A stretch of DNA of 64,000 nucleotides from Parasitella parasitica NRRL 2501. Lineage: Eukaryota; Fungi; Mucoromycota. The notes beneath the pieces are model-generated. The model was not told the DNA's origin and did no database searches. It worked only from the letters and a program-made list of their open reading frames with translations. Of this stretch, positions 21,802 to 64,000 are shown piece after piece. A program made the translations under genes and the position numbers. Each line of letters starts with the position of its first letter. Position 1 is the stretch's first letter. The stretch spans positions 1 to 64,000 of the forward strand of contig MU619299.1 of NCBI GenBank assembly GCA_025201805.1, in the 5' to 3' direction.

Positions 21802-23296
21802 TTGTATTTTCAAATCAAAACTTATTGGGGGGGGGGGTACCTACAAAATCTGAAAATGAATCTCACAACAAAAATGACCTTCAACAAACTTACTTGAAAT
21901 GATGTAAAGGATTAAAATAAAAAAGCATCATGCTATACATATTTCCGGGCTATTGCATATATCTTAATATACTTTGTTCTTCGCTTAGCATATATATATA
22001 TACCATTTAGTTTTTAGGAATTATAAAATCATCTCTTTATATATAATCTACCATGCCCAAAAACCTTCAACGCACTATCACACATACAACTGTGGAAACT
22101 CGAGAGAAAATCTGCTTTGACCATTTTATGGGTTTCATGCCAGTAAAAAAAAGTCTGACAAAAATATCGAATAGCTGACAAAATAGCCAGAGATATCCAT
22201 GATCAATTTCGTAAAACTGACTCTGTTGAATACCGTCCTCGAGGAGACCCACGAAATGTAAAGATTCAGCAAATCCGCTCTGAATTTTTAAGAAATATAA
22301 TTGACGAAGAAGGTGAGGGAAATATTTTGACATTAGAGCGACTGCAGCAAAGACTTATTGTCGAGTTCCCAGAAGAATTTCCTTTAAAAAATGCAATTGG
22401 GATTGCTACAATCCAAAAGCATATAACTCTCAGAAGCTGTGCCTGACTCTCAAAAGAACATCCCCAGTGGAATAAATACAAATAACTGAAAGAATAGCAA
22501 GAGAGCGAAAAGATTACTGCATTGGTCTTTCGCTCAAGGGTATTAATTACATGACAAATTGTATTTTTGTTGATGAAAGTGGATTTAATGCTTGTATGGT
22601 ACCTGGACATGCAAGATCAGCCAAAGGAAAGAAGGCCCATGTAATCAAAAAAGACGAAGAGAGGCAAGAATATTTCAATCATTGGTGCTATTTCAGCAAA
22701 ACGGGTTGAATCTTTTTACAAGCTGCTATGACAGATGGTTATACAAACGGGTTTATTTTTGCTGAATTTACCAAGCAGCTGTTGGAATGGGTTGATATGG
22801 AATACCCACATCAAGAATTCTATTTTATTATGGATAATTTAAAATTTCACAAGAGTCCTATTAGACAGAATCTTTTTAAACACTCAAAACATAGCCGCCA
22901 TTTCTTGCCGCCATATTCTCCTATGCTAAATCCTATGGAAACTAGCTTCAACGAATTGAAAAACTTTGTTAGAAGGGATCCAAAGAAAAACAAAGAGACT
23001 CTCTTGGAGCTCATTAAGGAAGTAGAGAAGAAAATAACTCCTCAAGACTGTGAAGGATGGGCCCATCATTGTGTCAATAATGTCAATAGATGTATTGCTG
23101 GAGAAGATCTCACGTTTGAAAATTAGTGTTATATTTTATTGAATAAAATGACTTTCTTTACCAAAGTTGTGATTCATAAGTACTGTCGGTTCGATAAGTA
23201 ATTTTTGTGAGATTGACTAGGTCAATTTTGTGAGTTTGATTAGATCATTTTTGTAGGTACCCCCAAATATTTTGTGAGTTTGATTTGAAAATACGA
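21802..23296 (+). mobile_element. Tc1/IS630-type DNA transposon, ~1.5 kb, decayed
   Basis: Imperfect TIRs (ttgtattttcaaatcaaa...gggtacctacaaaa / ttttgtaggtacccc...tttgatttgaaaatacga) flanked by TA at 21800-21801 and 23297-23298; internal transposase. Confidence 0.9.
22053..23126 (+). pseudogene. DD34E transposase pseudogene
   Basis: FVDESGFN (~22565); IMDN-x34-E spacing ending FLPPYSPMLNPME; stops and frameshifts upstream of 22728. Confidence 0.9.
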
Positions 23297-24665
23297 TACT
23301 ATCTATTTTACATGTTTAGCGTTAGAGTCACAAAAAGGGACTTTTGAACTGACATTAAGCATTTTTATAAGCGATAATGGTAAAGGGCTTTTCTGTCACT
23401 CGCAATTAGTAACCTATGAATTATTTACAAATAACAAGGGGTTATTACAGCAAAGCATTGTATCCATTAATTATCCTCTTCTGCTTCCAACTCGATGAGC
23501 CACACCTGTTTTATCATTTTATTATGAAGAAAGGTATAATTTAAAAATATTTACTTTATAAAGCTGTAGAATTGATATTGACGTGATATCACCTCCAGAA
23601 AAATATTTTTACAGCTTAAAAGCAAGAACTTTAGCTTCGTGAGCCATTTTTCGATTAATTTTCATAATCAAAAGTGCTCTGAAAACACGAAAAATAGTAT
23701 CCATTGGTAAAAATATATATTATATATGATTTTGGTGCGATTTGAGCATGATTTTTTTTTCGATGCAAAATGACAGATTTTTTCAATTTTTTCCTTGTAT
23801 CCACACATCTAAAATCATCAATTATGCATTATCCTCGATTTTGACCTCAAAAATGCAACTTTTTACTATATCATATATTGGAGGAAAATGATCATAAAAG
23901 GTCATTGCTTGATCTGAAAAGACTAGAAATGCGCTTTGATTAAGCAAAATGTTGATTTTTTCCTCTTAATCTGTTTTTGAGGTTTTTCGGCAGAATTCCT
24001 TTCATAAGCATACGGGAATTATGAAATGACACCAGCGTATAGAGCGTCCAAAAATACAGCTATTATCATAAAATGACAGCCGTGGTATGCATAGTATCGG
24101 AGGATGATATCTTGCCTCAAAGGAGTAATTTTGGTTTCGAATTGTCCAAATGGAGTTTCTGAAAGAATCTTTTCTTCCTGATTTTGGACGCATTTAATCT
24201 CCGCTGCCAGAGAAAAATGGTGCTTTTTTGAAGAAAGCATTAGCTTTGAGAAGACATAGCTTACCCAATTAAAAAGAAAAACAATCGAAGCCTATTTTAT
24301 ATAAATTTTGAGCTTCTTGGCTTTCTTATGGTAGTACTTGCATGTCTGTACCTGATTTGACGATATCACGCTCCGATTTTGAAAAATACTTTTCCGAAAA
24401 AAGTCAGAGATGTGGATACCTTCATCTGATTTCAACTTAAAAAGAATAAAATCTTGCTTTAAGCTATGCAAATATGTAATCGAAAAGGTGCCTTATAGTC
24501 GAATACATTACTTTGTATTACTTTTTTTGTGTTTGAGATTGCTAAACATTGTTTTCTTACAGTTTTTGTCTTTTTTCTGACAATAACACAGTGAAGCCCG
24601 CGTAGACCAAAAAAAAAAAAAAAAAAAATCAGACGCCTAAAATCTACGCTGGCTTTACAAAGACA
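23297..24665 (+). repeat. Dispersed ~1.35-kb non-coding repeat, copy A1
   Basis: Collinear with the reverse complement of 57836-59185, with near-identical core blocks (e.g. gaaaatgatcataaaaggtcattgcttgatctgaaaagactagaaatgcgc). Confidence 0.9.
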
Positions 24666-25134
24666 CACTTTTGAACCATTCTAATATTATGGAAAAGATA
24701 GCACAGGTTTGACTAGCTGTTCTACTGTGCAACTGGATATGCTGATCCCAGCTTGGTACTTGTCTGACAAGACCTTCTACACTAGAGGACTCCAGGTAAA
24801 CTGAAGGTATAAAGAAATGCCAGAGAAAAGGAAAGAGTTTGCCACCAGGATAATATACCCATTCATAAAAAATCATCTGTATAAAAATTTATAAAATTCC
24901 AAGCCCATTTAAATGAATCTTGCTGTTCGTTCCTGAATCCCTTTAAAGGTTGTAGATCCAAAGTCAACAGACATACTTACACCCAGAATCACAGTGATGT
25001 TTGTCAATAGGCAACCGTAACCTTTTTTTAAAGACTATTTTGAACTTTAAGGTAAGATGCAAATAGCTTATTTCACAACACATTCTCTTAATATTTTCAG
25101 TACGAATGAAACAAATTAAAGCAATTACTTTTTT

Positions 25135-25266
25135 TCTTTAAATATGGAATCCCTACTTAAATTCATTTTAGGGAGACATTTTTCTTCTCTCAGAAACTTC
25201 GTAGCATTTATCAGAGATAAAAGTTTTTTTTTTTTTAACCAGAAACCCTAATATATATTATCACAA
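25135..25266 (+). repeat. Diverged fragment of the repeat family that flanks XPB
   Basis: cctactt...gagacattt...ctctcagaaacttc...cagaaaccctaat aligns with 59875-59993. Confidence 0.75.
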
Positions 25267-25279
25267 TTGATGTTGATAC

Positions 25280-52168: not shown

Positions 52169-53499
52169 TGCTGGCTTTCTGCATCGCGAGCAACACTCAT
52201 TGTTATAGTATCGAGCGTCTGTTTGATATTGTGTTAGTACTAGCACCTCACAATGAACACAATTTTCTTTTTATAGCACATGCACTACATACAAACCTTT
52301 ATCTTCGAAAACCATGATATTTTATATGTACCTTTGAGCAAACAAAAAGGATGAAAGAATATGGATGACAACTTGGCGTTGAAACTTTTATATGTGTATA
52401 ATATTTGGGGGGTTCCCCGGTTGAACCACGTTTTTAACTTTTTTTTTGTCAATAAAGAGAAAAAATCTTTAATGGACAGCAATTGAAGCAAATTATAAGA
52501 AAAGGGGAAGAGAAATGAAAGAAGGAGTTTCGTAAGGGTGATGATAACCAAAAGAACTTTCGCCTCCTTGAAACTGTTTGGCTTTTTGGTTTGTAATCCT
52601 TTGCTCTCATTATCTCTAACTTCTATATACATCTCAGGGCTGTGAATCCGTTGATGCGGTCTAGGTGTGTCCCACTGTTGGAAAAAATATGTATCACAAG
52701 AGAAATAGTAGCACAAGCTATATATATATAGTTGCCTTATATAGCGAATCGCTAATATAAACAATGGAATAAGAATTCTGTATTATAGACACAATGAGCC
52801 GAGATGATATACTCTTGGGGTATCAAATGCGAATTCAAAAGATGACTATTCGAAACGTGGCATACAAACATGGCTATAAATGACACATGAGAATTGCGGT
52901 TCTTGTGCGAGAAAATATCTTGCTCATTCACCAGATTAATGTACGCTTGTATTCTTCTCCTTGAACCTCTTTTACATTAAAGGGTTTCAGGGCTATATCC
53001 TGTTGAAATTGGTACAATTTGTGAATGATGTCAAGTCTGAGGCATCTAGCGTTACTTTTTGGCTAATAAAGCGTTTATTAGAAGGTTTGCTAACATTTTT
53101 ATCGCAATGATTAAGGCTGTATAATAATAATTCAAGATTTAGTATCTAGGATTTGGATATTGATCCTGACTTTATTTTTTTTAATTACATAATATCTAAG
53201 GTACACAGCTAACTGGAGAAAATTTCTCTTTAACTACACGTTTTCCGACGTCATATGATGCTTTGCAAATCTTACACCTCGGACGCATTTTTTTTTTAAG
53301 ATGGGTAGGGGAGAATTGTTGACGAGGAAGGGAGCGATGTAATAAAATGGGAAGAAGAAGTTCACCCACTTCACCTAGAAACGTTAAGCCGCCTAAGACT
53401 TTATTGTGGAAAGCAGGGCCCAGAGCAAAACTCGGTTGATAAAGCTTTAGGTGCTGAATACGAAGAAGCTGCAAGAGTAGTAAAAACGCAGAAAAAGCA

Positions 53500-53785
53500 T
53501 CACAATGGCTACTCCAGCGAACAAAAACTTCCTTTTGTCTATTATAATAGGGTAAACCTATTCGATGCTGCTAAATCTGGTAGATTAGCTGAAAGAATTG
53601 CTGAATGAACAGCACAGAAATGGGCCAAGAGACTCAAAAAAGACAAAAATTGGAACATCTTGGAAAATCAAACTAACAAAGTCAATAGGCCAAAGGCGCA
53701 GCTTGATGAAAGACATAAGATTCATCTACTCAACTTTTATGATGATAACCCTCAAGCCAAGATTGTTGATGTAGTTGCTTCGCTC
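53500..53785 (+). pseudogene. Tc1/IS630 transposase N-terminal (HTH) remnant
   Basis: AAKSGRLA..IAE*TAQKWAKRLKKDKNWNILENQTNKVNRPKAQL...FYDDNPQA with an in-frame stop. Confidence 0.75.
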
Positions 53786-53789
53786 ATTT

Positions 53790-54060
53790 CTGTTTCATGC
53801 ATTTTGACACTGGTACTGTAACCATTAGTTATATATAGGCAGGTCCGGTAGATGATTTTTAGTTGAGCCTAAAACATCGACACCATTCAATGCTTACAAG
53901 ATAGCTTGTTCACCTGTCAAACCACCTGTGACAATTGCAATCTTTCGATCAATTTTATTTGGTAATCTAGCATAGGCAGCAACTTGATGTTACCCCAACA
54001 AAGCTCTCTTTATAGTTTCTTGGCCAGGGAGCTGCTAGATCCAAAAATCAAAACTTTCAT
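53790..54060 (-). pseudogene. NAD(P)H-binding flavin reductase/NmrA-like pseudogene fragment
   Basis: MKVLIFGSS / GQETIKRALLG*HQVAAYARLPNKI..IVTGGLTGEQAIL*ALNGVDV, with a frameshift and stops. Confidence 0.65.
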
Positions 54061-54679
54061 TTTGTAACGTTAAAGTATAATTATATATTGGGTAAAGAGA
54101 AGTAGTTGGATGGTGGGCATAGCTTTTATGTGTAAAGCAAAAATGAGACTAGACTACAAATAATCCCCATTACTGGCTCATATTGTAAGATTCTGTGCGC
54201 AATGGAGAGTCTGTTGTGCTTATCATTATCTATTGATATTATACCGCATAAATTTACATGAGTCAAATGCGCAAAAATTAATACAGTGGAATAAACGGGT
54301 TGAAGGTGAAAACCATATTTCATTATACCTATTGGTATTACGCACTGTCTAGAGGATCTCCTATTCTAGTTTATAACGCTGCTGGAAGGAGAATTTGTAT
54401 AGAATTCTCTTTCATTGACAACATTTTGCAATGGCCAGCACTACTTTTCATACAAGTCAATGTTATCTTTGAAGGATCTTGCGTTGAAAAGTTATATCCC
54501 AGGCGATACCATTAAGCCCTCGTGAATGTCTCTTTGTCATTAACAACCTACATAGCAACAGCGACTTTTCCTTCGAACAAGAACTGTATTATGGACTACA
54601 TTACATGTGTAAAATTTGCAACCATGTTTACTTGATTGAATGAAATAAAAGAATATGTATCATATGAACCTATGCTGTT

Positions 54680-55193
54680 GTAGAACCAAAGTACTTCAGT
54701 TCTGATCAAGAGGTACTAGCAAGAATACATTTCGAATTCAAAATCGACTTGGACAAGGCGAAAAAGATAGGCATTTCTTTAACTTCGATAAGTTTAAGAA
54801 GAACATGTCGCTTCTACTACATGTCATGCGCTTCCAGCAGAAGGTTGTAACCCAGCGACGCTGCATACTATCTATTGCCTCACTTAGGCATTCTATAACC
54901 CCAGCAACGCTGCATATAGAACCCTTTGACTTGAAGTAGAATCAAGGTAATTCATTTCTGATCAAGAGGTACCAGCAAGAGCACATTTTGAATTCAAAAT
55001 CGAGTTAGACAAGGCGACCAAAGACAGATATTTCTTTACCTTTGATAAGTTCAAGAAGAGCATGTCGCTTCTACTACATGTCATGCGCTTCCAGCAGAAG
55101 ATTGTAACCCAGCGACGCTGCATACTATCTACTGCCTCACTTAGGCATCCTATAACCCCAGTAACGCTGCATATAGAACCCTTTGACTTGAAG
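54680..55193 (+). repeat. Tandem duplication, two ~257-bp units
   Basis: Units start at ~54680 and ~54937 (gtagaa.caa.gta.ttca.ttctgatcaagaggtac); second halves are nearly identical. Confidence 0.9.
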
Positions 55194-55479
55194 AAAGCTT
55201 GTTTCTGAGGGAAGAGAATAATGTATTAAAAATTACAAAAACAAGCAATAATTGACTGATGATGTCAGCATAGATTTATCAAAATGTGAACGCGGACGAA
55301 TAGGCAAACCAACTTTTCAAACCAATGTCAGAGTATCGAGGAAAACAAGGTGAATCAATAGAGATACTTACATGTAGATCATAATATACTAATCAAAAGT
55401 TCAATTTTTTTACAGCATTACATAGTTATATAAATAATAACAGAGTTCCTTATTTCAATGATTTCATCACAGAGAACAA

Positions 55480-57615
55480 AATGAATTTCATGCAATGGCT
55501 GGAGTACAAGCAGCAGATAGAGCCAATGACCCTTTTTGCATTGTGGCGAAGCCGATTTGCAATGGCCCTACGAGATTATAAAAAGTTGGAGATGAAAGTA
55601 GAAGGGTAAGTAGCTTAATTACTTTGATTGATGTAATAATCTGATAATGAAATGTACGATTTACCAAAAGAAAAGGCACGTATAACAAGGCATTTTGGGA
55701 GGATATTTTAAAAGGGGCAAAGGCACTCGTAAGTTGCAAATTATTCACAACCATCAATATCTTGATATTAACCACAAAACAAAACAAACTACATTTAGTA
55801 TGATGCAAGAGTTACCTGCACGGTCAACGCAATTGGGGCCGCTGTGATGGCTACTGCTGCCGCCACTACTATGCTAGCCGAGTCCTTTACTACCACTGAT
55901 AATGAACTTGTTGCTGATTCCTCTACTTCCACTGTCGATTATACTACTACTACCGCAGGTAAAGAGAGTACAATAAGAACTGCTGCTGAAACTACCTCTC
56001 GAAGTTATGAAGCGACCAGCACTAGTACTATGACTCCCACCACTGGCGATGACACTATTGCTTCTGCACATCTTACCTGGGATAAGATACCAGCGGACGA
56101 TCATGAATCGCGCTTTCATTATTTGGCCCATAAAAAGGTAAGCGCCATATACTATTTCCATCAGAACTATGCTAGATGTTCTAATTTTTTTAAACAGTGT
56201 TCTCCAAGTGCGCTTTTAAATGAAGAAGAGAAGATGTATTTGAGTGATTACAAAAGCAATGGCTCTCCCAAGGCGGATCTATTATTTATTTGCGCATCTC
56301 TACTTTTGAAAGAAGAACTCACGTGTGAAGAGGATGCATTGCTCGAGTAAGTAATATAAATAAAAATACGTCTTGCCCATTTTAACGATAAATGTATGCA
56401 GATTGAGTCTTTCCGGAATTTACAACTATCTAAATCCATATATGAAGAAAGTGTACCAAGAGAAGTTGAATAGAGCACCGCCCTCCACAATAATAACTAC
56501 AACCACTGCCACCAATTCCGTTGCTGAAGTCATGACAAGCGTTCGTAATTTGCTCGACAGTGAGAAAGATATGGATGATATGCTGTATGAAGTACAGTTG
56601 GAAAAAGCCAGACTTGTCAAAGAGAAGCTGAGACACAGTGACATGTACAAGGCACTGGCAATTCTGGAGAAAGTGTAAGTAGAGCAATATACGGAAATCT
56701 TGAATATACTATTGACAACTGCCAACTACCATTAACAGAATTGAAGACACGCAGCTTTGGAACGAAGCGGGCGACGAGCAGGAGATGACCTTCTACCGAC
56801 GCTTCGCTAGCTATCTGGACACACTGCTAATTAAAACTGATCTGAATATGATCGAGTATGTGTATAGAACCAAATTTGATATTTCTCTAATCATATCCCT
56901 CTTATTTTTCTCAGTGGAGAAACTGGCTGCTCAAGCAGCAAAATTGCAATTGAAACTAACAAACAACTGTTCCACGTCGAAGATTCGTCAGCAACGTACG
57001 CACGCAAGAACATAGACTTATGTAGTAATGAGTGGAAGAGATCGAAGGTGACTTCAGAGTTGAAATTAAAGCAGCAGTCAAAAAATTTGCGCATAAATGC
57101 TTCCATCATGAACAGCTTGCATGCATTTGGTACCTCTCCCTCATCTCTTTTAGCAATTGATATGATAGGTGATGATATTGTGATTAACCGTAGCGGCAAA
57201 TTATTGACAAAATTATATTCTATAGGTTTACACGGCTATATCTACCTGTTGACAAAAGTGGATGACTACTTCGTTGCAACCCCCCACTCAATCCTTGTAA
57301 TACCAAGACGTTTTGCAGACATTGCATGTATTGAAAATACTCTCCTAGCTCTTTTTAAATTCAAAGTAAGTGTCTTTTTCTTTTACAAGTGCACGGCCGC
57401 GTTGAATTGACATCAAAATTTGATAGCATTTTTACACATCATTGGTTCCTGCATTAAGAAAGAGAATTGCTGCAACTGAGATTTACAGTGATATTGGAAG
57501 TGTTTGCGAGATGGATGCCGCTATCTCTGATAGTACTCATGTCAATCAAAATTTTATATTTTTTAAGTCTAAAAAAAGAAAGCATAGTGCCTCCGAGTCT
57601 GAAGAGGACAACTAG
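55480..57615 (+). CDS. Hypothetical multi-exon protein of a repeat-associated family, possible PD-(D/E)xK nuclease fold; 5' end uncertain
   Basis: EMTFYRRFA..LD, GET..SSK, IDLCSNEWK, QQSKNLRIN, IDMIG|LHGYIY; spliceable exons end at TAG 57613-57615. Confidence 0.55.
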
Positions 57616-57835
57616 AAACTCCCTCACATGAATATTTTCTTGTATTTTATTATTCTTTTTTTATTTTTTTCATCAATAAATTAGTACCATAGTATACCCT
57701 TTGCAGTTAATAATTATCATATAAATTTCATTCATGAATAGCTGGAATATAGTGCATTGACGTGAAATCCTGAGTTAAAGGTTGATTTGATCTATCATAG
57801 TCCAATATATCTTGTATAGTGCACATCTTATTTGA

Positions 57836-59185
57836 TGTCTTTATAAAGCCAGCGTAGACCTTGAGCGCCTGATCTTTTTTTTTTTTTTTTTTTTTTCGGT
57901 CAAGCGAACTTCAGTGTGTTATTGTTGGAAAAAAGACGAAAACTGTAAGAAAACAATTCTTTAGCGATCTCAAACAAAAACAAAAAAAATTAATTTAAAG
58001 TACTGTATTAGACTATGTGGCACTTTTTAACTACATATTTGCATAGCTTAGACCAAGTTTTTGTACTTTTTAAGTTGATATCAGTTAAACGTAACGACTT
58101 TCTTGACTTTTTTCAGAAAAGTATTTTTCAAAATCTGAGCGTGAGATTGTCAGGCTAGGTACAGACATGCAAGTACTACCATTAAATAGCCAAGAAGCAC
58201 ACAATTTAATAATCGAGGTTTCAATTGTTTTTCTTTTGAATTAGTTAAGTTATGGCTTCTCAAAGCTAATGCTTTCTTCAAAAAAAGCACCATTTTTCTT
58301 TGATGGCGGAGATTAAACGCATCTAAAATTAGGAAGAACAAATTCTTTCAAAAACTCCATTTGGACAATTCGAAACCAAAATTACTCTTTCGAGGCAAGA
58401 TATCATCTCCCGATACTATGCATACCACGGCTGTCAGTTTATGATAATAGATGTATTTTTCGGCGCTCTACAAGATGGTATCATTTCATAATCCTCGTAT
58501 GCTTAGAGAAGGAATTCTACCGAGAAAACCTCAAAAGCAAATTAAGAGGAAAAAATCAACATTTTGCTTAATCAAAGCGCATTTCTAGTCTTTTCAGATC
58601 AAGCAATGACCTTTTATGATCATTTTCCTCCAATATATGATATAGTAAAAAGTTGCATTTTTGAGGTCTAAAGTGAGGATAATGCATAATTGATGATTTT
58701 GGATGTGTGGATACAAGGAAAAAATTGAAAAATCTGTCATTTTGCATCGAAAAATAAATCATGCTCAAATTGCACCAAAATCACATATAATATAGTTGTT
58801 TCCCAATGGATACTATTTCTGGTGTTTTCAGGGCACTTTTGATTATGAAAATCAATCAAAAAATGGCACACGAAGCTAAGGTTTTTGATTTTAAGCTGTA
58901 AAAAATATCTATCTGGAGATGATATCAAGTCAATATCAATTCTATTACATGGCAAAGTCCTATAAAGTAAGTATAGTTGATACCACAAGAATACAATTTT
59001 TTAAGATACCATAATCAAACAGATGTGGCCGATTGAGTTGTAAGCAGAAGATAATAATTAATGAATACAATGTTTTGCTGTGATGACCTCTTTTGATTTG
59101 TGAATAATTCATAATTACCATTTTTAATTATGAGAATGCCTAATGTCAGTGATTTCAATGCTAATCATGTACAATAGAAAGTAGA
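57836..59185 (-). repeat. Dispersed ~1.35-kb non-coding repeat, copy A2 (inverted relative to A1)
   Basis: Reverse complement aligns with 23297-24665. Confidence 0.9.
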
Positions 59186-59509
59186 GTAGAGGTTAGGATT
59201 GAGGTTGAGGGTAATTGTATTAACAAAAAGTAAAGCTTCATAATAAGCTTCTGATAAATTCCAGGTTCCAGGCACTGCACTTTCAAGTATCAAACTCTGA
59301 CAAGGGGTAATTTGCTATACCAAACACATTTTTGCACACCAACCCGTCCTTGATATTGGATATGCTGACTTTACTCAACAGATGTAACATAAAATGATAA
59401 TGCGAAGTTACAAAAATAGAGATTGTCATTTGCTGAATCTTCTATGATTTTTCATTGTGTAAATTCATATTTTGACAGATACGTACAAATGAATGCTTTA
59501 TTAGTATAT

Positions 59510-59950
59510 ACAGTTTAATTTGATATTTTGATGGTTTTGATGGTTTTGTGGTTTTGTGGTTTTGTGGTTTTGTGGTTTTGTGGTTTTGTGGTTTTGTGGT
59601 TTTGTGGTTTTGTGGTTTTGTGGTTTTGTGGTCTAACCATTTTTTTTAGTTTAAATACCTATGCAGTTCTATAGACTTGTCTAAATATTTGGGTTTATAT
59701 AGATGTCTAATATCTAACGGAAATATCTGAAATAGTTAAATTATAGGTCGTTGGTGATTGTTCAGTTTTAGGTATCTAAAGTACATCCTGCAAAATGATT
59801 GCTTGATCAATAATTAGGGCATCGCAATTTCGCATATCATGTTGAGATTTTCCCTCTTCTTTGGTATTTTTAATCTAAAATAGAAATCCTACTTGAAATA
59901 TTCTTAAAGAGACATTTCTCTCTCAGAAACTTCTCAGCTTTTATCAAAAA
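59510..59950 (+). repeat. Left arm of long inverted repeat flanking XPB; contains (TTTTGTGG)11 at 59544-59631
   Basis: 59510-59934 reads as the exact reverse complement of 63576-64000. Confidence 0.97.
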
Positions 59951-60154
59951 TAAAAGGCTTGTTATCAGAAACCCTAATGTATATCATCTCAATCACCATG
60001 CCCTTTGTCATTTACTGGAATTTTTTTCCAGAAACCATAAAAAGACTGTAAATGCATATTGCTTTGTAAGAACGTGACTAGGAAACCAGCTCTACAGTAA
60101 TCCATCAACTGCGGTTTGGTCAACATTTTCTTCTTGGTTTTTACTCAATCCAAC

Positions 60155-63121
60155 ATGAGCAATAAGAGAAGAATTGATGGTATATACGTGCACATTGAGT
60201 CAGTTGGTATAACACACACTATAGCTGTTTACATATAAATGTAGAGCTCAGTGATGACGAAGATGATGATGATGTTCAATTAGATGATACTTTACAATCA
60301 AAGCTCTTTGGTAAATAAAGAAGATGTGTCCAACATTGTTGTAGCTTTGTATAACTTGTGTAATAGTTCCAAAAAATGCCAATCTCGAAATCAATTCTTT
60401 AAAATCAGGCAATGAAACCATTGTCGAGTCCAATAAGTCTGATTTCATTTCTCACATCTTTGGTCGTGAAGATTACACCAATCTCCCCTTAAAGCAAGAC
60501 CACGCCTCTAGACCTCTGTGGATCAGTCCTGAGGATGGGCATATTATTTTGGAAGGTTTTTCACCTATTGCGGAGCAGGCTCAAGATTTCTTGGTTGCAA
60601 TTAGTGAACCTGTCAGTCGGTAATATTGCTGTTGATTAAAATTTGGGTTTAACAGCGAAGAAACTCATAGTATATTCATAGGCCTGCTCACATTCACGAG
60701 TACAAACTGACACCCTATTCATTATATGCTGCTGTTTCCGTAGGTTTAGAGACGGAGGATATTATTGAAGTTTTGAATCGTCTTTGCAAGGTGCCTGTTC
60801 CTGATTCCATCACCCAATTTATTCGTCAATGCACATTGTCATATGGTAAAGTTAAGTTGGTCTTGAAGCATAATCGTTATTATGTCGAATCTTCTCATCC
60901 CGAGACATTGCAAATGCTACTCAAAGATGCTGTTATCAATACGGGTCGTATTGTACGGGACGAAAATGACCAAATTATCAGTGCACCTGCTGGGTCTGCC
61001 GCGCTCTTGGTCAACTCAAAACCCACAGGAAAAGATCTGGCTATTCCTGGTGTCAAAAACCCCACGAAAACAGACGATGGCAGCGTTGAGAAGATTAAGG
61101 AAATGACAGCCGAAGAAGATGAGCGAAAAAAAGAGGAAGAAAAGTTTTTTGGTGCAGTTGTAGGAATTGATAAAGAAGACGAAGAAGATGATTTTGGCGG
61201 GGAGCAGGTTCATTCGTTTGAAATTGCTGCAGAGCACGTAGAGGTAAATGTGTTTATTATATTTGTGATTTAGATGTAAATACTGATTTGGATGGTATCA
61301 CAGAACATCAAAAAAAGATGTAATGACATTGACTATCCCATGTTGGAGGAATACGATTTCCGTAATGACACAGTCAATGCAAATCTCGAAATCGACCTCA
61401 AGCCGACAACCACGATTCGTCCATATCAAGAAAAGAGTCTCTCTAAAATGTTTGGTAATGGGTAATGTATAGCGATCGATTTGATGTATAACTGAGAATG
61501 CTCAGACATTTTGCCAATAATAGCCGTGCTCGTTCTGGAATTATCGTTCTTCCGTGCGGTGCTGGCAAAACTCTTGTTGGCATCACTGCTGCCTGTACTA
61601 TTAAAAAGAGCTGTCTTGTGCTGTGTACATCTTCGTAAGCATCTCCCTACAATATAATGTCGCTTCTTGTTGCTAACCTTTCTTTGTAGTGTATCAGTCA
61701 TGCAGTGGAAACAGCAATTTTTACAGTGGAGTAGTATCAAGGAAAATCAGGTTGCTGTATTTACATCTGATTGCAAAGAGAAATTTTCTGGTGCATCAGG
61801 TATCGTAATCTCAACCTATTCGATGGTGGCAAACAAGCGTAAACGTTCGTATGATGCTCAAAAGATGATGGAGTTTTTGGAGTCTCGTGAATGGGGATTT
61901 TTATTGTTGGATGAAGTGCACGTTGTGCCTGCAAATATGTTTCGAACTGTTGTTACAACCATTGCTGCACACGCCAAGTTGGGGCTGACAGCTACCTTGG
62001 TTCGTGAAGATGAAAAGATTGATGACCTCAACTTTTTGATCGGCCCCAAATTATATGAGGCCAATTGGATGGATTTGGCCAGTCGTGGTCATATTGCAAA
62101 TGTACAGTGTGCCGAAGTATGGTGCCCGATGACGCCCGAATTTTACAAAGAGTATTTGTATGAAAACTCTCGAAAACGTACATTATTATACGTGATGAAT
62201 CCAAAGAAGTTTCAAGCCTGCCAATACCTTATTGGATACCACGAGAGACGAGGCGACAAGATTATTGTCTTTTCCGATAACGTATATGCTCTTATCGTAA
62301 GTTGTTGGACCTAATCCACAAAAGTATTAATTGACATAACCTTGTTGGTAGGAATATGCCAAAAAATTAGGAAAACCTTACATTTATGGTGGTACTGGTC
62401 AACAGGAGCGTATGCGTATTTTGCAAAATTTTCAATACAATCCTGCCGTCAGCACAATCTTTTTGTCGAAGGTTGGCGACACAAGCATCGATTTGCCTGA
62501 AGCTACTTGCTTGATCCAAATCTCTTCTCATTATGGCTCTAGACGGCAGGAAGCCCAGCGTTTGGGCCGTATTTTGAGAGCAAAGAGACGTAACGATGAA
62601 GGGTTCAATGCTTTCTTTTATTCGCTCGTTTCACGCGATACGCAAGAAATGTATTATTCTACAAAGCGCCAGCAGTTTCTAATTGATCAAGGTTATGCTT
62701 TCAAAGTTATCACAAATCTCGAAGGCATGGACAGTGATCCCGACATTGTGTTTAGAACTCATCAAGAGCAAATGGACCTTTTGAAGGCTGTATTATTAAC
62801 AAACGATGTAAGTTGTCGGCTTAAATCAGGTTGTTCCACTTACTAAGAGAAATATAGACTGATCTAAGAGACGAAGAGTTAATTAATGTGGATGATGTTG
62901 GTAAAATTACTGACCGCAAGGTCGCTGCCAAGAACCGAGCATCAGGCCTGGTTAAAAGACAAGTTACGACAACAAAAACTCTTGCTGGTGGTGATAACAT
63001 GGCCTACCTTGAATACAACCGCAATTCTGGCGGCCAATTTTCTGGTCGTGGCCGTGGCAATGGCGGCGCTCCTCCGAAGGAACATCACACGCTTTTCAAA
63101 AAATTCATGGGAAGAAAGTAG
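60155..63121 (+). CDS. SSL2: TFIIH helicase/translocase XPB
   Basis: [65 protein letters not shown]; exons appear spliceable with no lesions seen. Confidence 0.97.
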
Positions 63122-63559
63122 TTTTGACCAAATTATTAAAAGCCCTTTGTAAATAACCACATGTTTTTGTTACATAAGAATGGCACATTCTAAAGCAGCA
63201 GATTTATCATTATATTATCCTCTATTACAATCTTGGAAAAAAGAAAATATAGGCACTGTTTTATTTCACATGTCGCAGCAATTCACAACAGGAATCAGCT
63301 TTAAAAACAATGCATTGGCATCTACAAAAGTCGAATGGGTCGAAGCAGGCTGTTGGCATGAATCCTGCTTTTTCTTGACAAAAAGAAGTTCTTTTTAGTT
63401 TTTTCATATGACCAAAACGTAGAATTTAAACTATTTAGACCAGCAATATGGCCCTGATACGAAAAATAAATCCTTTGATAGTACTATAAGATCAAAAGTC
63501 CCTTTTGTGTGTGTGTGTGTTCCTTGAGGAAGGAGGGAACAACATTATAATCTATAGTC

Positions 63560-64000
63560 TTTTTAATAAAAGCTAAGAAGTTTCTGAGAGAGAAATGTCT
63601 CTTTAAGAATATTTCAAGTAGGATTTCTATTTTAGATTAAAAATACCAAAGAAGAGGGAAAATCTCAACATGATATGCGAAATTGCGATGCCCTAATTAT
63701 TGATCAAGCAATCATTTTGCAGGATGTACTTTAGATACCTAAAACTGAACAATCACCAACGACCTATAATTTAACTATTTCAGATATTTCCGTTAGATAT
63801 TAGACATCTATATAAACCCAAATATTTAGACAAGTCTATAGAACTGCATAGGTATTTAAACTAAAAAAAATGGTTAGACCACAAAACCACAAAACCACAA
63901 AACCACAAAACCACAAAACCACAAAACCACAAAACCACAAAACCACAAAACCACAAAACCACAAAACCATCAAAACCATCAAAATATCAAATTAAACTGT
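63560..64000 (-). repeat. Right arm of long inverted repeat flanking XPB (runs off the window); (CCACAAAA)11 at 63879-63966
   Basis: Mirror image of 59510-59950. Confidence 0.97.

Follow-up and report, generated by a model that had tools for sequence, protein, structure and literature searches.

The XPB/SSL2 gene on contig MU619299.1 of Parasitella parasitica lies between two oppositely oriented copies of an abundant Tc1-like element, which form a perfect inverted repeat of about 2.1 kb. Judged from gene structure and synteny, XPB is a resident host gene at its usual place, without capture by a transposon. The best reading of the identity of the two arms is that two separate insertions were homogenized by gene conversion, and we consider the chance that this is correct to be about even. 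The analysis was started from the first 64,000 nucleotides of the contig (the window) and the repeat was followed beyond the window edge. The features are listed in Table 1.

Table 1. Features of the XPB locus on contig MU619299.1
Feature	Position	Strand	Remarks and basis
Left copy of the ~2.86-kb Tc1-like non-autonomous element	57837..60048	+	Colinear alignment with other copies; located termini
Left arm of the inverted repeat, 2,114 bp	57837..59950	+	Exact in 57837-57889 and 58004-59934; 2 mismatches in 59935-59950; ~2x k-mer depth in 4 runs
8-bp microsatellite inside the element, ~12 units	59526..59632	+	Repeat search; variable region among family copies
Unique XPB island between two TA dinucleotides	60049..63554	+	Pfam, exon frames, tblastx, promoter alignment, k-mer contigs
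Conserved core-promoter block of XPB	~60060-60155		Aligned to the other Parasitella assembly
XPB/SSL2 CDS, multi-exon	60156-63121		ATG 60156, stop 63119-63121; exon frames
3' flank of XPB inside the island			432 bp
Right copy of the element	63555..66274 (window part 63555..64000)	-	Terminus search, alignment; right arm 63560-65629

Extent of the inverted repeat and independent read evidence

A repeat search reported inverted arms at 59510-59950 and 63560-64000. The first-pass annotation of the window had described an exact inverted repeat of 425 bp with first mismatch at 59935/63575 and a match running off the window edge, and both statements were borne out. By a base-by-base count the arms are exact for 425 bp inside the window, and a second mismatch follows at 59945/63565. 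Beyond the edge the exact match runs for a further 1,507 bp to 58004/65506, where the right arm is interrupted by a scaffold gap of 70 N (65507-65576), and past this gap the arms match again at 100% for 53 bp (57837-57889 and 65629-65577). The true arms extend over 57837-59950 and 65629-63560 (contig coordinates equal window coordinates) and have 2,114 bp each, about five times the length that the earlier annotation could see, with a spacer of 3,609 bp between them. No mismatch between the arms was found over 1,984 comparable positions, followed by two mismatches in the innermost 16 bp; positions 57890-58003 of the left arm, whose partner is the N gap, were left out of this count. The microsatellite has 12 units of TTTTGTGG in both assembled arms, an equality that may stem from the construction of the assembly and is beyond the reach of 31-mers. 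Matches of other family copies in BLAST break at about 59560-59620, in the microsatellite region. At position 57959 the k-mer contigs contained a variant with a 1-nt indel, whose depth was about one third of the local value, and the arms may therefore differ at this site.

An inverted repeat of this kind may result from assembly or scaffolding if one arm is wrongly duplicated or collapsed. The assembly is indeed scaffolded and contains many N gaps, including the one in the right arm, and a single consensus may have been entered twice to give a perfect repeat. As a read test we used Logan k-mer contigs (k=31) of four public runs (X1, X3, X4, X5) from four studies. In X4 and X5 one contig covering 59905-63605 crosses both inner junctions. 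The right inner junction is bridged in all four runs (contig end 63605), and the junction-spanning contig begins at 59928 in X3 and at 59959 in X1. The contig ends fall exactly 30 nt past the last arm-specific bases. At the outer left boundary, a left-flank contig of 2,703 nt stops at 57864-57866, corresponding to 57836 + k-1 and thus to a branch in the graph; it reaches 28-30 nt into the arm, just below the 31-nt rule for bridging. The k-mer depth of exact arm-internal contigs was about twice that of the flanks, with 296-340 versus 150-159 for X1, 72-88 versus 40 for X3, 61-74 versus 38 for X4, and 55-67 versus 27 for X5, while the XPB island was a single 1x contig in the four runs. The inner junctions, the exact branch at the outer boundary and the roughly doubled arm depth argue strongly against an artefact, which we regard as extremely unlikely. 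This confirmed that the inverted repeat around XPB is real.

The arms belong to an abundant Tc1-like family

The genome-wide search with the arm that had been proposed in the first-pass annotation identified the arms as members of an abundant, dispersed family with at least 200 matches in the genome. Homology spans about 57836 to 60050, with at least 73 and 48 scored matches out of 135-228 candidates. The element is about 2.86 kb long and non-coding, has TIRs of about 190 bp and the ends CAGTC...GACTG, and is flanked by TA. The A-end and C-end TIRs are complementary over 189 bp at 82%, with the ends CAGTC.../...GAC(A/T)G. TA follows 17 of the 20 distinct C-ends and five of the eight A-ends, the remainder being mostly TG, and beyond the flanking TA the sequences of the copies are unrelated. 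On the basis of the TA flanks together with the CAGT termini, the element is Tc1/mariner-like and, as judged from its sequence, non-autonomous. In view of the TA/CAGT statistics, readings of the termini as hAT (8-bp), Mutator, LTR, Helitron or Transib were abandoned. A 5-bp TSD, GCATT, formed by the C-end of the left copy and the A-end of the right copy, is not a trait of the family; three other full copies lack one, and the true flank is TA. An identity as Mutator/Foldback element, as suggested earlier from long TIRs with internal tandem repeats, does not agree with these data: the flanks show TA only without a TSD of 9-11 bp, and the arms consist mostly of a unique-sequence body with one microsatellite of 96 bp. 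Likewise, no TSD of 8-11 bp, for which the first-pass annotation had suggested a search, surrounds the unit, and the flanks in the family are mostly TA.

Other copies are 84-90% identical to the arms overall and at most 93% in the central 400 bp. The genome contains at least 171 matches to DDE_3, many of them apparently intact ORFs of the Tc1 type. In one family copy (L019) a DDE_3 ORF is located directly upstream of the last ~700 bp of the family sequence, which is suggestive, but only suggestive, of a link to an autonomous partner. Tc1 transposons of the Tc1-MP1 type with long TIRs are known from Mucorales, and a homolog from Parasitella parasitica, CEP14362.1, is listed (PMC9977792). The element at XPB resembles Tc1-MP1 in its ends (TA|CAGTC...GACTG|TA here and the TACA...TGTA type in Tc1-MP1; PMC9977792), in its long TIRs (about 190 bp versus 141 bp in Tc1-MP1) and in the host clade. 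It differs from Tc1-MP1 by the lack of a transposase, the size of about 2.86 kb and the internal microsatellite. The non-autonomous family of ~2.86 kb with TA flanks, CAGTC termini, TIRs of ~190 bp and at least 200 copies appears to be so far undescribed.

Termini of the two copies

The left copy is without the outer 646 bp, which comprise the A-end TIR and a spacer. At its other end the C-end TIR is complete, with the terminus ...AAAAAGACTG adjoined by TA at 60049-60050. Position 57837 corresponds to position 647 of the family reference and other copies align colinearly through it, so the left copy breaks off on its outer side within the element; the break is preceded by GAT, not TA. The right copy holds both termini. 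Next to its A-end terminus (...ATGACAG) stands TA at 66275-66276, and its inner C-end terminus reads GACTA followed by TA, one transition off the consensus. The copy has lost 88 bp internally at an A5/T5 microhomology, with this terminus left in place. The GACT-TA match at the inner end of the right copy has a probability of about 1.2e-3 to arise by chance, and the two element ends were the sole matches among 1,295 A5-followed 7-mers in 74 kb. We also considered a subfamily sharing the deletion junction of the right copy, and the pattern search matched this locus alone.

The two copies are oppositely oriented, and the C-end terminus and TA of each face XPB. Since both copies have their own C-end terminus and TA beside the XPB island, two transposition events are indicated.

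XPB and its genomic neighborhood

The insertions sit 107 bp upstream of the ATG of XPB and 432 bp downstream of its stop codon, and XPB keeps only about 100 bp of native promoter. When the exons were searched singly, the Pfam domains Helicase_C_3, ResIII and ERCC3_RAD25_C were found, and the exons are colinear with XPB of Mucor lusitanicus with 77-100% amino-acid identity (tblastx). By these features XPB is intact at this locus. The arms contain no ORF longer than 83 aa, and the tested ORFs (83 aa and 66 aa) had no Pfam match. Pfam, exon colinearity and the ORF check of the arms thus agree with the earlier description of the spacer as containing XPB and no transposase. A tRNA scan of 55-64 kb did not find any tRNA. 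A second DNA copy of XPB was looked for in the genome and not found, so that the copy count proposed in the first-pass annotation gave a single copy at the DNA level; the only other locus with ERCC3_RAD25_C (C15) is a different gene with a weaker score.

Synteny, the comparison of which had also been proposed, was traced through the single-exon neighbor ESA1. XPB is adjoined by zf-C2H2 and ESA1. The arrangement ESA1(+) zf(+) XPB(-) recurs unchanged in order and orientation in a divergent Parasitella assembly, whose genes share about 86% DNA identity with those here, and XPB also adjoins ESA1 in two Mucor species. The 21 kb examined in the other Parasitella assembly contain neither the arms nor a copy of the Tc1-like family, and the same neighbors are kept in this arm-less assembly. 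We attempted to reconstruct the empty sites from this assembly, and the intergenic DNA was too diverged for clean empty sites: only the core-promoter block of XPB and the 3' end of zf could be aligned.

Proposed readings of XPB as cargo or invertible segment

Two inverted copies of one Tc1-like family bracketing a single gene may be taken for a mobile unit that carries XPB, whether in the form of a non-autonomous element with long TIRs, of a Pack-type capture or of a Tc1 composite. Inverted pairs of DDE_3 genes with equal score, 1-8 kb apart, are also frequent in the genome. We consider a mobile unit highly improbable. The termini point inward, so that XPB lies outside both elements, XPB is single-copy, and its neighborhood is conserved in relatives without arms. 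Functional termini at both outer ends together with a TSD of the whole unit were not found, the right outer end being the only terminus, and because of the missing left outer terminus the unit cannot move as a composite. The view of the first-pass annotation that a long-TIR element carries XPB was therefore abandoned. Its proposal of a composite transposon was right in recognizing the arms as copies of one repeat, but a mobile composite did not emerge. Instead, the locus essentially shows the arrangement that the first-pass annotation had named as speaking against its own reading, with XPB at its ancestral site and on each arm, as a member of a dispersed family, an own inward terminus with TA.

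Pack-MULEs and other gene-capturing DNA transposons, as well as composites of the bacterial style, share with the XPB locus the position of a gene between inverted transposon-derived repeats. The XPB locus differs from them by the lack of a pair of outer termini and of a unit-wide TSD; unlike the cargo of Pack-MULEs, XPB is complete, single-copy and syntenic, and the superfamily is Tc1-like and not Mutator.

The arms can support inversion of the 3.5-kb XPB island by homologous recombination. Both flip states of XPB share all four junctions, and the 2.1-kb arms exceed the phasing of contigs with k=31. No recombinase domain was seen among the few neighboring ORFs scanned, and nothing indicates that inversion of the island is programmed or functional. 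A more speculative view, to which we assign a low probability, is that the island is a segment that flip-flops by recombination in the multinucleate mycelium, or an early stage of gene packaging between mirror-image Tc1 copies. If this were true, a 2.1-kb hairpin would form from read-through transcripts and could feed the RNAi machinery of Mucorales.

Inversion was also considered as the origin of the repeat itself. A staggered break or a recombination flip could have started from one intact element beside an oppositely oriented XPB and duplicated 2.1 kb. The full C-end of the left copy and the A-end of the right copy would then add up to one full element plus a duplication, and in the flipped configuration the 5-bp GCATT stands beside both TAs. 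The right copy has, however, its own C-end terminus and TA in the present state, the family generates duplications of TA and not of 5 bp, three other full copies show no 5-bp TSD, and the arm-less relative already shows the present orientation of XPB. A staggered-break inversion with an element that is whole only when flipped is therefore disfavored and considered improbable.

Origin of the arm identity

The arms are 100% identical to each other over 1,397 aligned bp, compared to 84.5-89.6% between the arms and 11 other copies (median among those 87%). Just inside the identical tract, homology persists and is diverged, with 2 of 16 mismatches plus 1 of 12 at the terminus. This pattern, with arm identity far above that of the family and diverged homology beyond the tract, fits gene conversion without proving it. 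The maintenance of arm identity by conversion, suggested in the first-pass annotation for an invertible cassette, is the part of that proposal that we favor. According to our model, the resident XPB gene would have gained two insertions of the same Tc1/mariner-like element in this Parasitella lineage, both copies being as old as the rest of the family. Intrachromosomal conversion between the inverted copies, possibly from left to right, would then have made the shared 2.1 kb identical. The identical tract ends with the uninterrupted homology: its outer limit is the truncation of the left copy, and its inner limit lies 16 bp short of the 88-bp deletion of the right copy.

Alternatively, one copy may be a very young derivative of the other that arose by recent local duplication, through a local hop of a trans-mobilized element, aberrant or one-ended transposition, or template-switch repair. 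Two deletions would have followed, of 646 bp in the left copy and of 88 bp in the right copy, the latter of a kind that abortive gap repair at microhomology typically leaves. The lack of differences in 1,984 bp, including the microsatellite in the assembly, and the 88-bp deletion at A5/T5 with retention of the terminus are in line with such a scenario. The many apparently intact DDE_3 ORFs imply that transposase may be available, and another pair of family copies with 98% identity indicates that the family has not lost all activity. The three inner mismatches, each a C:G>T:A transition, cluster at the deletion junction and could represent repair errors in a recent duplicate. Other observations argue against it. 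No other copy exceeds about 90% identity to the arms over their length, which does not suggest a recent burst from such a master, and two independent deletions are required, yet there are no substitutions. In addition, the T of the right copy at the mismatch 59935 is present in 8 of 29 other copies; as a shared family variant it looks like an old lineage marker and not like a new error. The ranking of the nearest relatives also reverses between the shared and unshared parts. For the unshared A-spacer of the right copy, L050 is nearest (89.3%) and L047 farthest (84.0%), whereas the shared body is nearest to L047 (88.6-89.9%) and far from L050 (about 85%). This reversal, with a signal of only about 2-3 standard errors per comparison, suggests that the right copy is a mosaic. 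We thus consider a recent local duplication possible, though rather doubtful. Homogenization of two insertions by conversion has its own difficulty: between copies that had already diverged by 10-15%, conversion is expected to be strongly suppressed, so that similarity kept from early on or an unusual event would be needed.

Discussion

Inverted-repeat arms that are homogenized by gene conversion occur in the ampliconic palindromes of the human Y chromosome and in plastid IRs. As in these palindromes, the identity of the arms at the XPB locus is far above that of dispersed paralogs and drops sharply at the arm boundary, and the unique spacer could flip by recombination. Unlike them, the arms represent two transposon insertions and not an ancient segmental palindrome, and they are gene-free, with one gene only in the spacer.

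XPB is an essential helicase of DNA repair and transcription and part of TFIIH. What looked like an essential gene inside an element with giant TIRs has been resolved as a resident gene between two common Tc1-like insertions, and in this respect the locus is neat but unexceptional. It also illustrates cleanly how two inverted copies can be perfectly identical over 2.1 kb in a family that is otherwise diverged by 10-15%. This makes the locus suited to estimates of ectopic conversion or local transposition, processes that are little documented in Mucorales, and it marks a position at which an essential gene could be inverted or lost. The ~2.86-kb family adds to the picture of a Parasitella parasitica genome that is crowded with elements of the Tc1 type.

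Extent and read support of the inverted repeat

The window belongs to a scaffolded assembly of 32.8 Mb and 450 contigs, and 10 kb beyond it were examined on its contig C63 (175,947 bp). The exact 425-bp inverted match described in the first-pass annotation (59510-59934 versus 64000-63576, first mismatches at 59935 and 59945) was correct, and it did exceed the window edge as stated there: the exact match continued outward for another 1,507 bp, to 58004/65506, and halted at a scaffold gap. Past this gap, another 53 bp (57837-57889 and 65629-65577) were 100% identical before the arm ended. Each arm measures 2,114 bp, and 3,609 bp separate the two (see table). The assembly sequence contained no mismatch between the arms in 1,984 comparable positions, including equal microsatellite length and leaving out the N gap.

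We compared Logan k=31 contigs from four public sequencing runs (X1, X3, X4, X5; four studies, two organism labels) with 57700-63699. In all four runs, the right inner junction was bridged by one single-depth contig ending at 63605. This contig spanned 59905-63605 in X4 and X5, covering both inner junctions, and started at 59928 in X3 and at 59959 in X1. Contig ends at 59935-30 and 63575+30 are exactly what is expected from a de Bruijn graph if the shared sequence starts at 59934 and 63576. A left-flank contig of 2,703 nt halted at 57864-57866 (57836 + 30) in all runs, indicating that the graph branches precisely at the outer boundary of the arm; this contig entered the arm by only 28-30 nt, with 31 nt required for bridging, which is inherent to k=31. 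The k-mer depth of exact arm-internal contigs was about twice that of both flanks in every run (296-340 versus 150-159 in X1, 72-88 versus 40 in X3, 61-74 versus 38 in X4, and 55-67 versus 27 in X5). Junction contigs, outer branch and arm depth together make an assembly artefact very unlikely. Since all four junctions are common to both flip states, k=31 contigs look alike for either orientation of the island, and they do not resolve the microsatellite length, for which equality holds in the assembly sequence.

In three of the four runs, a variant lacking 1 nt at 57959 made up about one third of the local depth; this position corresponds to the N stretch of the right arm. The variant suggests that arm identity is less than perfect there, which may account for the gap. 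At 59043, A>G was seen at about single depth in three runs, though a double-depth contig has A at this position. Both variants could be arm differences or stem from a third near-identical copy. A contig of about single depth in all four runs linked 59942 to 60021, omitting 78 nt, with a shorter side of just 21 nt; it is probably another copy of the arm family.

The arms belong to a dispersed element family

Searches of the strain's own genome revealed that the entire arm, and not the inner end alone, is a member of an abundant dispersed family (at least 73 and at least 48 matches scored, among 135-228 candidates). Homology to the left copy begins at about 57836 and finishes at about 60050, with BLAST identities of 77-89%. 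Other copies are colinear across the equivalent of 57837 and extend 646 bp further, across a spacer and into a terminal repeat, giving a full element of about 2.86 kb. It comprises the A-end (terminus ...AAAATGACAG), a spacer of about 460 bp, a body carrying an 8-bp microsatellite, and the C-end (terminus ...AAAAAGACTG). A-end and C-end have an inverted repeat of 189 bp in common (82%). No ORF exceeded 83 aa, and the 83-aa and 66-aa ORFs had no Pfam match. TA followed the C-end in 17 of 20 and the A-end in 5 of 8 distinct copies, with unrelated sequence beyond. This combination of TA flanks, CAGT termini and long TIRs is characteristic of Tc1/mariner elements. PMC9977792 describes Tc1 elements whose TIRs measure 141-169 bp and whose ends read TACA...TGTA, among them one Parasitella homologue. 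The arm element is a new non-autonomous member of this known superfamily, apparently undescribed so far. At least 171 DDE_3 matches occur in the genome. In the window, a decayed DDE_3 transposase fragment is located about 400 bp from another arm-family copy, and at L019, an arm-family locus on contig C8, a DDE_3 ORF immediately precedes the last 700 bp or so of the family sequence; both are possible remains of autonomous relatives.

The C-end of the left copy, with TA (60049-60050) after it, lies 107 bp upstream of the ATG of XPB. The right copy is colinear through the arm, and its A-end is followed by TA (66275-66276). Its inner end reads GACTA and then TA directly after the shared A5, a sequence one transition away from the family terminus. 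The right copy thus has an 88-bp internal deletion at A5/T5 microhomology but has kept its own end. The probability of a chance match of this terminal 7-mer at its spot is about 1.2e-3; no A5-followed 7-mer other than the two element ends matched among 1,295 in 74 kb. Both copies thus face the island with a genuine terminus and TA, and XPB lies outside both elements. The left outer boundary (57837), preceded by GAT, is an internal breakpoint of the element. As the pair lacks a left outer terminus, it cannot transpose as a composite, and the composite transposon considered earlier is very unlikely.

Features at the XPB locus, elsewhere in the genome and at L056 of GCA_000938895.1
Feature	Position (strand)	Remarks
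Left arm	57837-59950	
Right arm	65629-63560	
Scaffold gap	65507-65576	70 N
Left copy	57837-60048	A-end and spacer missing; C-end complete
Right copy	63555-66274	opposite orientation; A-end present
Island	60049-63554	3,506 bp
XPB stop codon	63119-63121	
XPB core promoter block	~60060-60155	
DDE_3 fragment	22563-23003 (+)	decayed
Arm-family copy	23415-25267 (-)	reference 58-1923, 85%
Segment upstream of left copy	52872-57836	
Tandem duplication	54661-55193	
ERCC3_RAD25_C gene	C15:219339-220019 (-)	133 + 80 bits; 628-aa open frame
MITE-like sequence	L056:14351-14982	46-55-bp inverted repeats (91-95%)
Inverted pair L030/L029	C161:31171-32837, 35329-33661	arms 1,669 bp, 99.64% identity; spacer 824 bp
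Inverted DDE_3 pairs	C46:167897/175900; C128:47419/51283; C25:91988/96190; C66:63818/69960; C38:61848/67094; C46:211998/215770; C30:246049/249895; C29:17151/23961; C14:312667/313700	

XPB is a resident gene

As the first-pass annotation had noted, the XPB/SSL2 gene in the island is complete and has several exons (Pfam domains Helicase_C_3, ResIII, ERCC3_RAD25_C). These exons are colinear with those of XPB in Mucor lusitanicus, and amino-acid identity is 77-100%. No second XPB DNA copy was found in the genome. Another, weaker ERCC3_RAD25_C locus on contig C15 is a different gene with no DNA similarity to the window XPB; it may be an XPB-like paralogue.

Other assemblies were reached through the neighbouring single-exon MYST/ESA1 gene. 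GCA_000938895.1, also labelled Parasitella parasitica, has ESA1(+), zf-C2H2(+) and XPB(-) in the order and orientation of C63, with XPB and zf-C2H2 tail-to-tail in both assemblies. The 21 kb of this locus (L056) contained neither a long inverted repeat nor an arm-family copy. ESA1 also adjoins XPB in M. lusitanicus and M. ambiguus, but head-to-head, implying small inversions older than the transposon arms. Alignment of the XPB core promoter block with L056 reaches to within about 10 bp of the element end. Conserved synteny and the aligned promoter indicate that XPB is resident, not cargo, and that the elements came to it. The proposal that an element carries or captured XPB is contradicted by the single DNA copy and the same neighbourhood in the arm-less relative.

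Coding DNA of the two Parasitella assemblies is about 85-86% identical (L056 versus window 60126-63127 and contig 66523-68961), the ESA1 protein is 92% identical, and intergenic DNA is unalignable; this is species-level divergence under a single name. The XPB-zf intergenic region of L056 harbors a MITE-like sequence unrelated to the arm family. The 5 kb or so upstream of the left copy have no counterpart between matching anchors in L056 (window 52754-52872 = L056 19606-19714); this segment has ORFs without Pfam matches and a tandem duplication, and is single-copy by contig depth.

Origin of the arm identity

Over an alignment of 1,397 bp, the arms showed 100% identity to each other, compared with 84.5-89.6% to 11 other copies, which among themselves had a median identity of 87%. 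There is about an even chance that this reflects two old insertions, which would later have been homogenised through gene conversion. Both copies possess a terminus of their own. The tract of identity stops with uninterrupted homology, at the outer truncation and, inside, 16 bp before the deletion; diverged homology continues just past it, with 3 differences over about 28 bp. The T of the right copy at 59935 also occurs in 8 of 29 other copies. The nearest relatives of the right copy differ between its unshared spacer (L050) and its shared body (L047), this reversal amounting to about 2-3 standard errors each.

A less probable but serious alternative to conversion is that a duplication took place locally and recently, through a local hop, aberrant transposition or template-switch repair, and that two deletions came later. 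It would fit the absence of substitutions between the arms, the resemblance of the deletion to gap repair, the three inner differences, all transitions at the junction, and the many apparently intact Tc1 transposases of this genome. A single staggered-break inversion, by which the element would be whole only when flipped, would explain why the left and right copies sum to one full element; the right copy's own terminus contradicts it, the duplications are TA and not 5-bp, and the arm-less relative already has XPB in the present orientation.

Inverted pairs and their possible consequences

Contig C161 has another long inverted pair that includes arm-family sequence. Its family C-ends point outward, each arm consists of about 600 bp of family and about 1 kb of other sequence, and the pair resembles a mirror-image derivative. 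In about nine cases, two Tc1-type DDE_3 matches with identical bit scores lay on opposite strands of one contig at a distance of 1-8 kb; among the matches listed, none formed a direct pair of equal score. Near-identical inverted Tc1 pairs seem to be common in the P. parasitica genome.

Nothing suggests that the XPB island is a designed switch, and the few neighbouring ORFs scanned included no recombinase. Perfect inverted repeats of 2.1 kb at a distance of 3.6 kb should recombine and invert the island at some frequency; an inverted island would still have its native promoter of about 100 bp. The arms contain no XPB sequence, and hairpin read-through RNA from them is possible. The locus is a known situation, a gene between inverted transposon copies whose arms were homogenised or recently duplicated.
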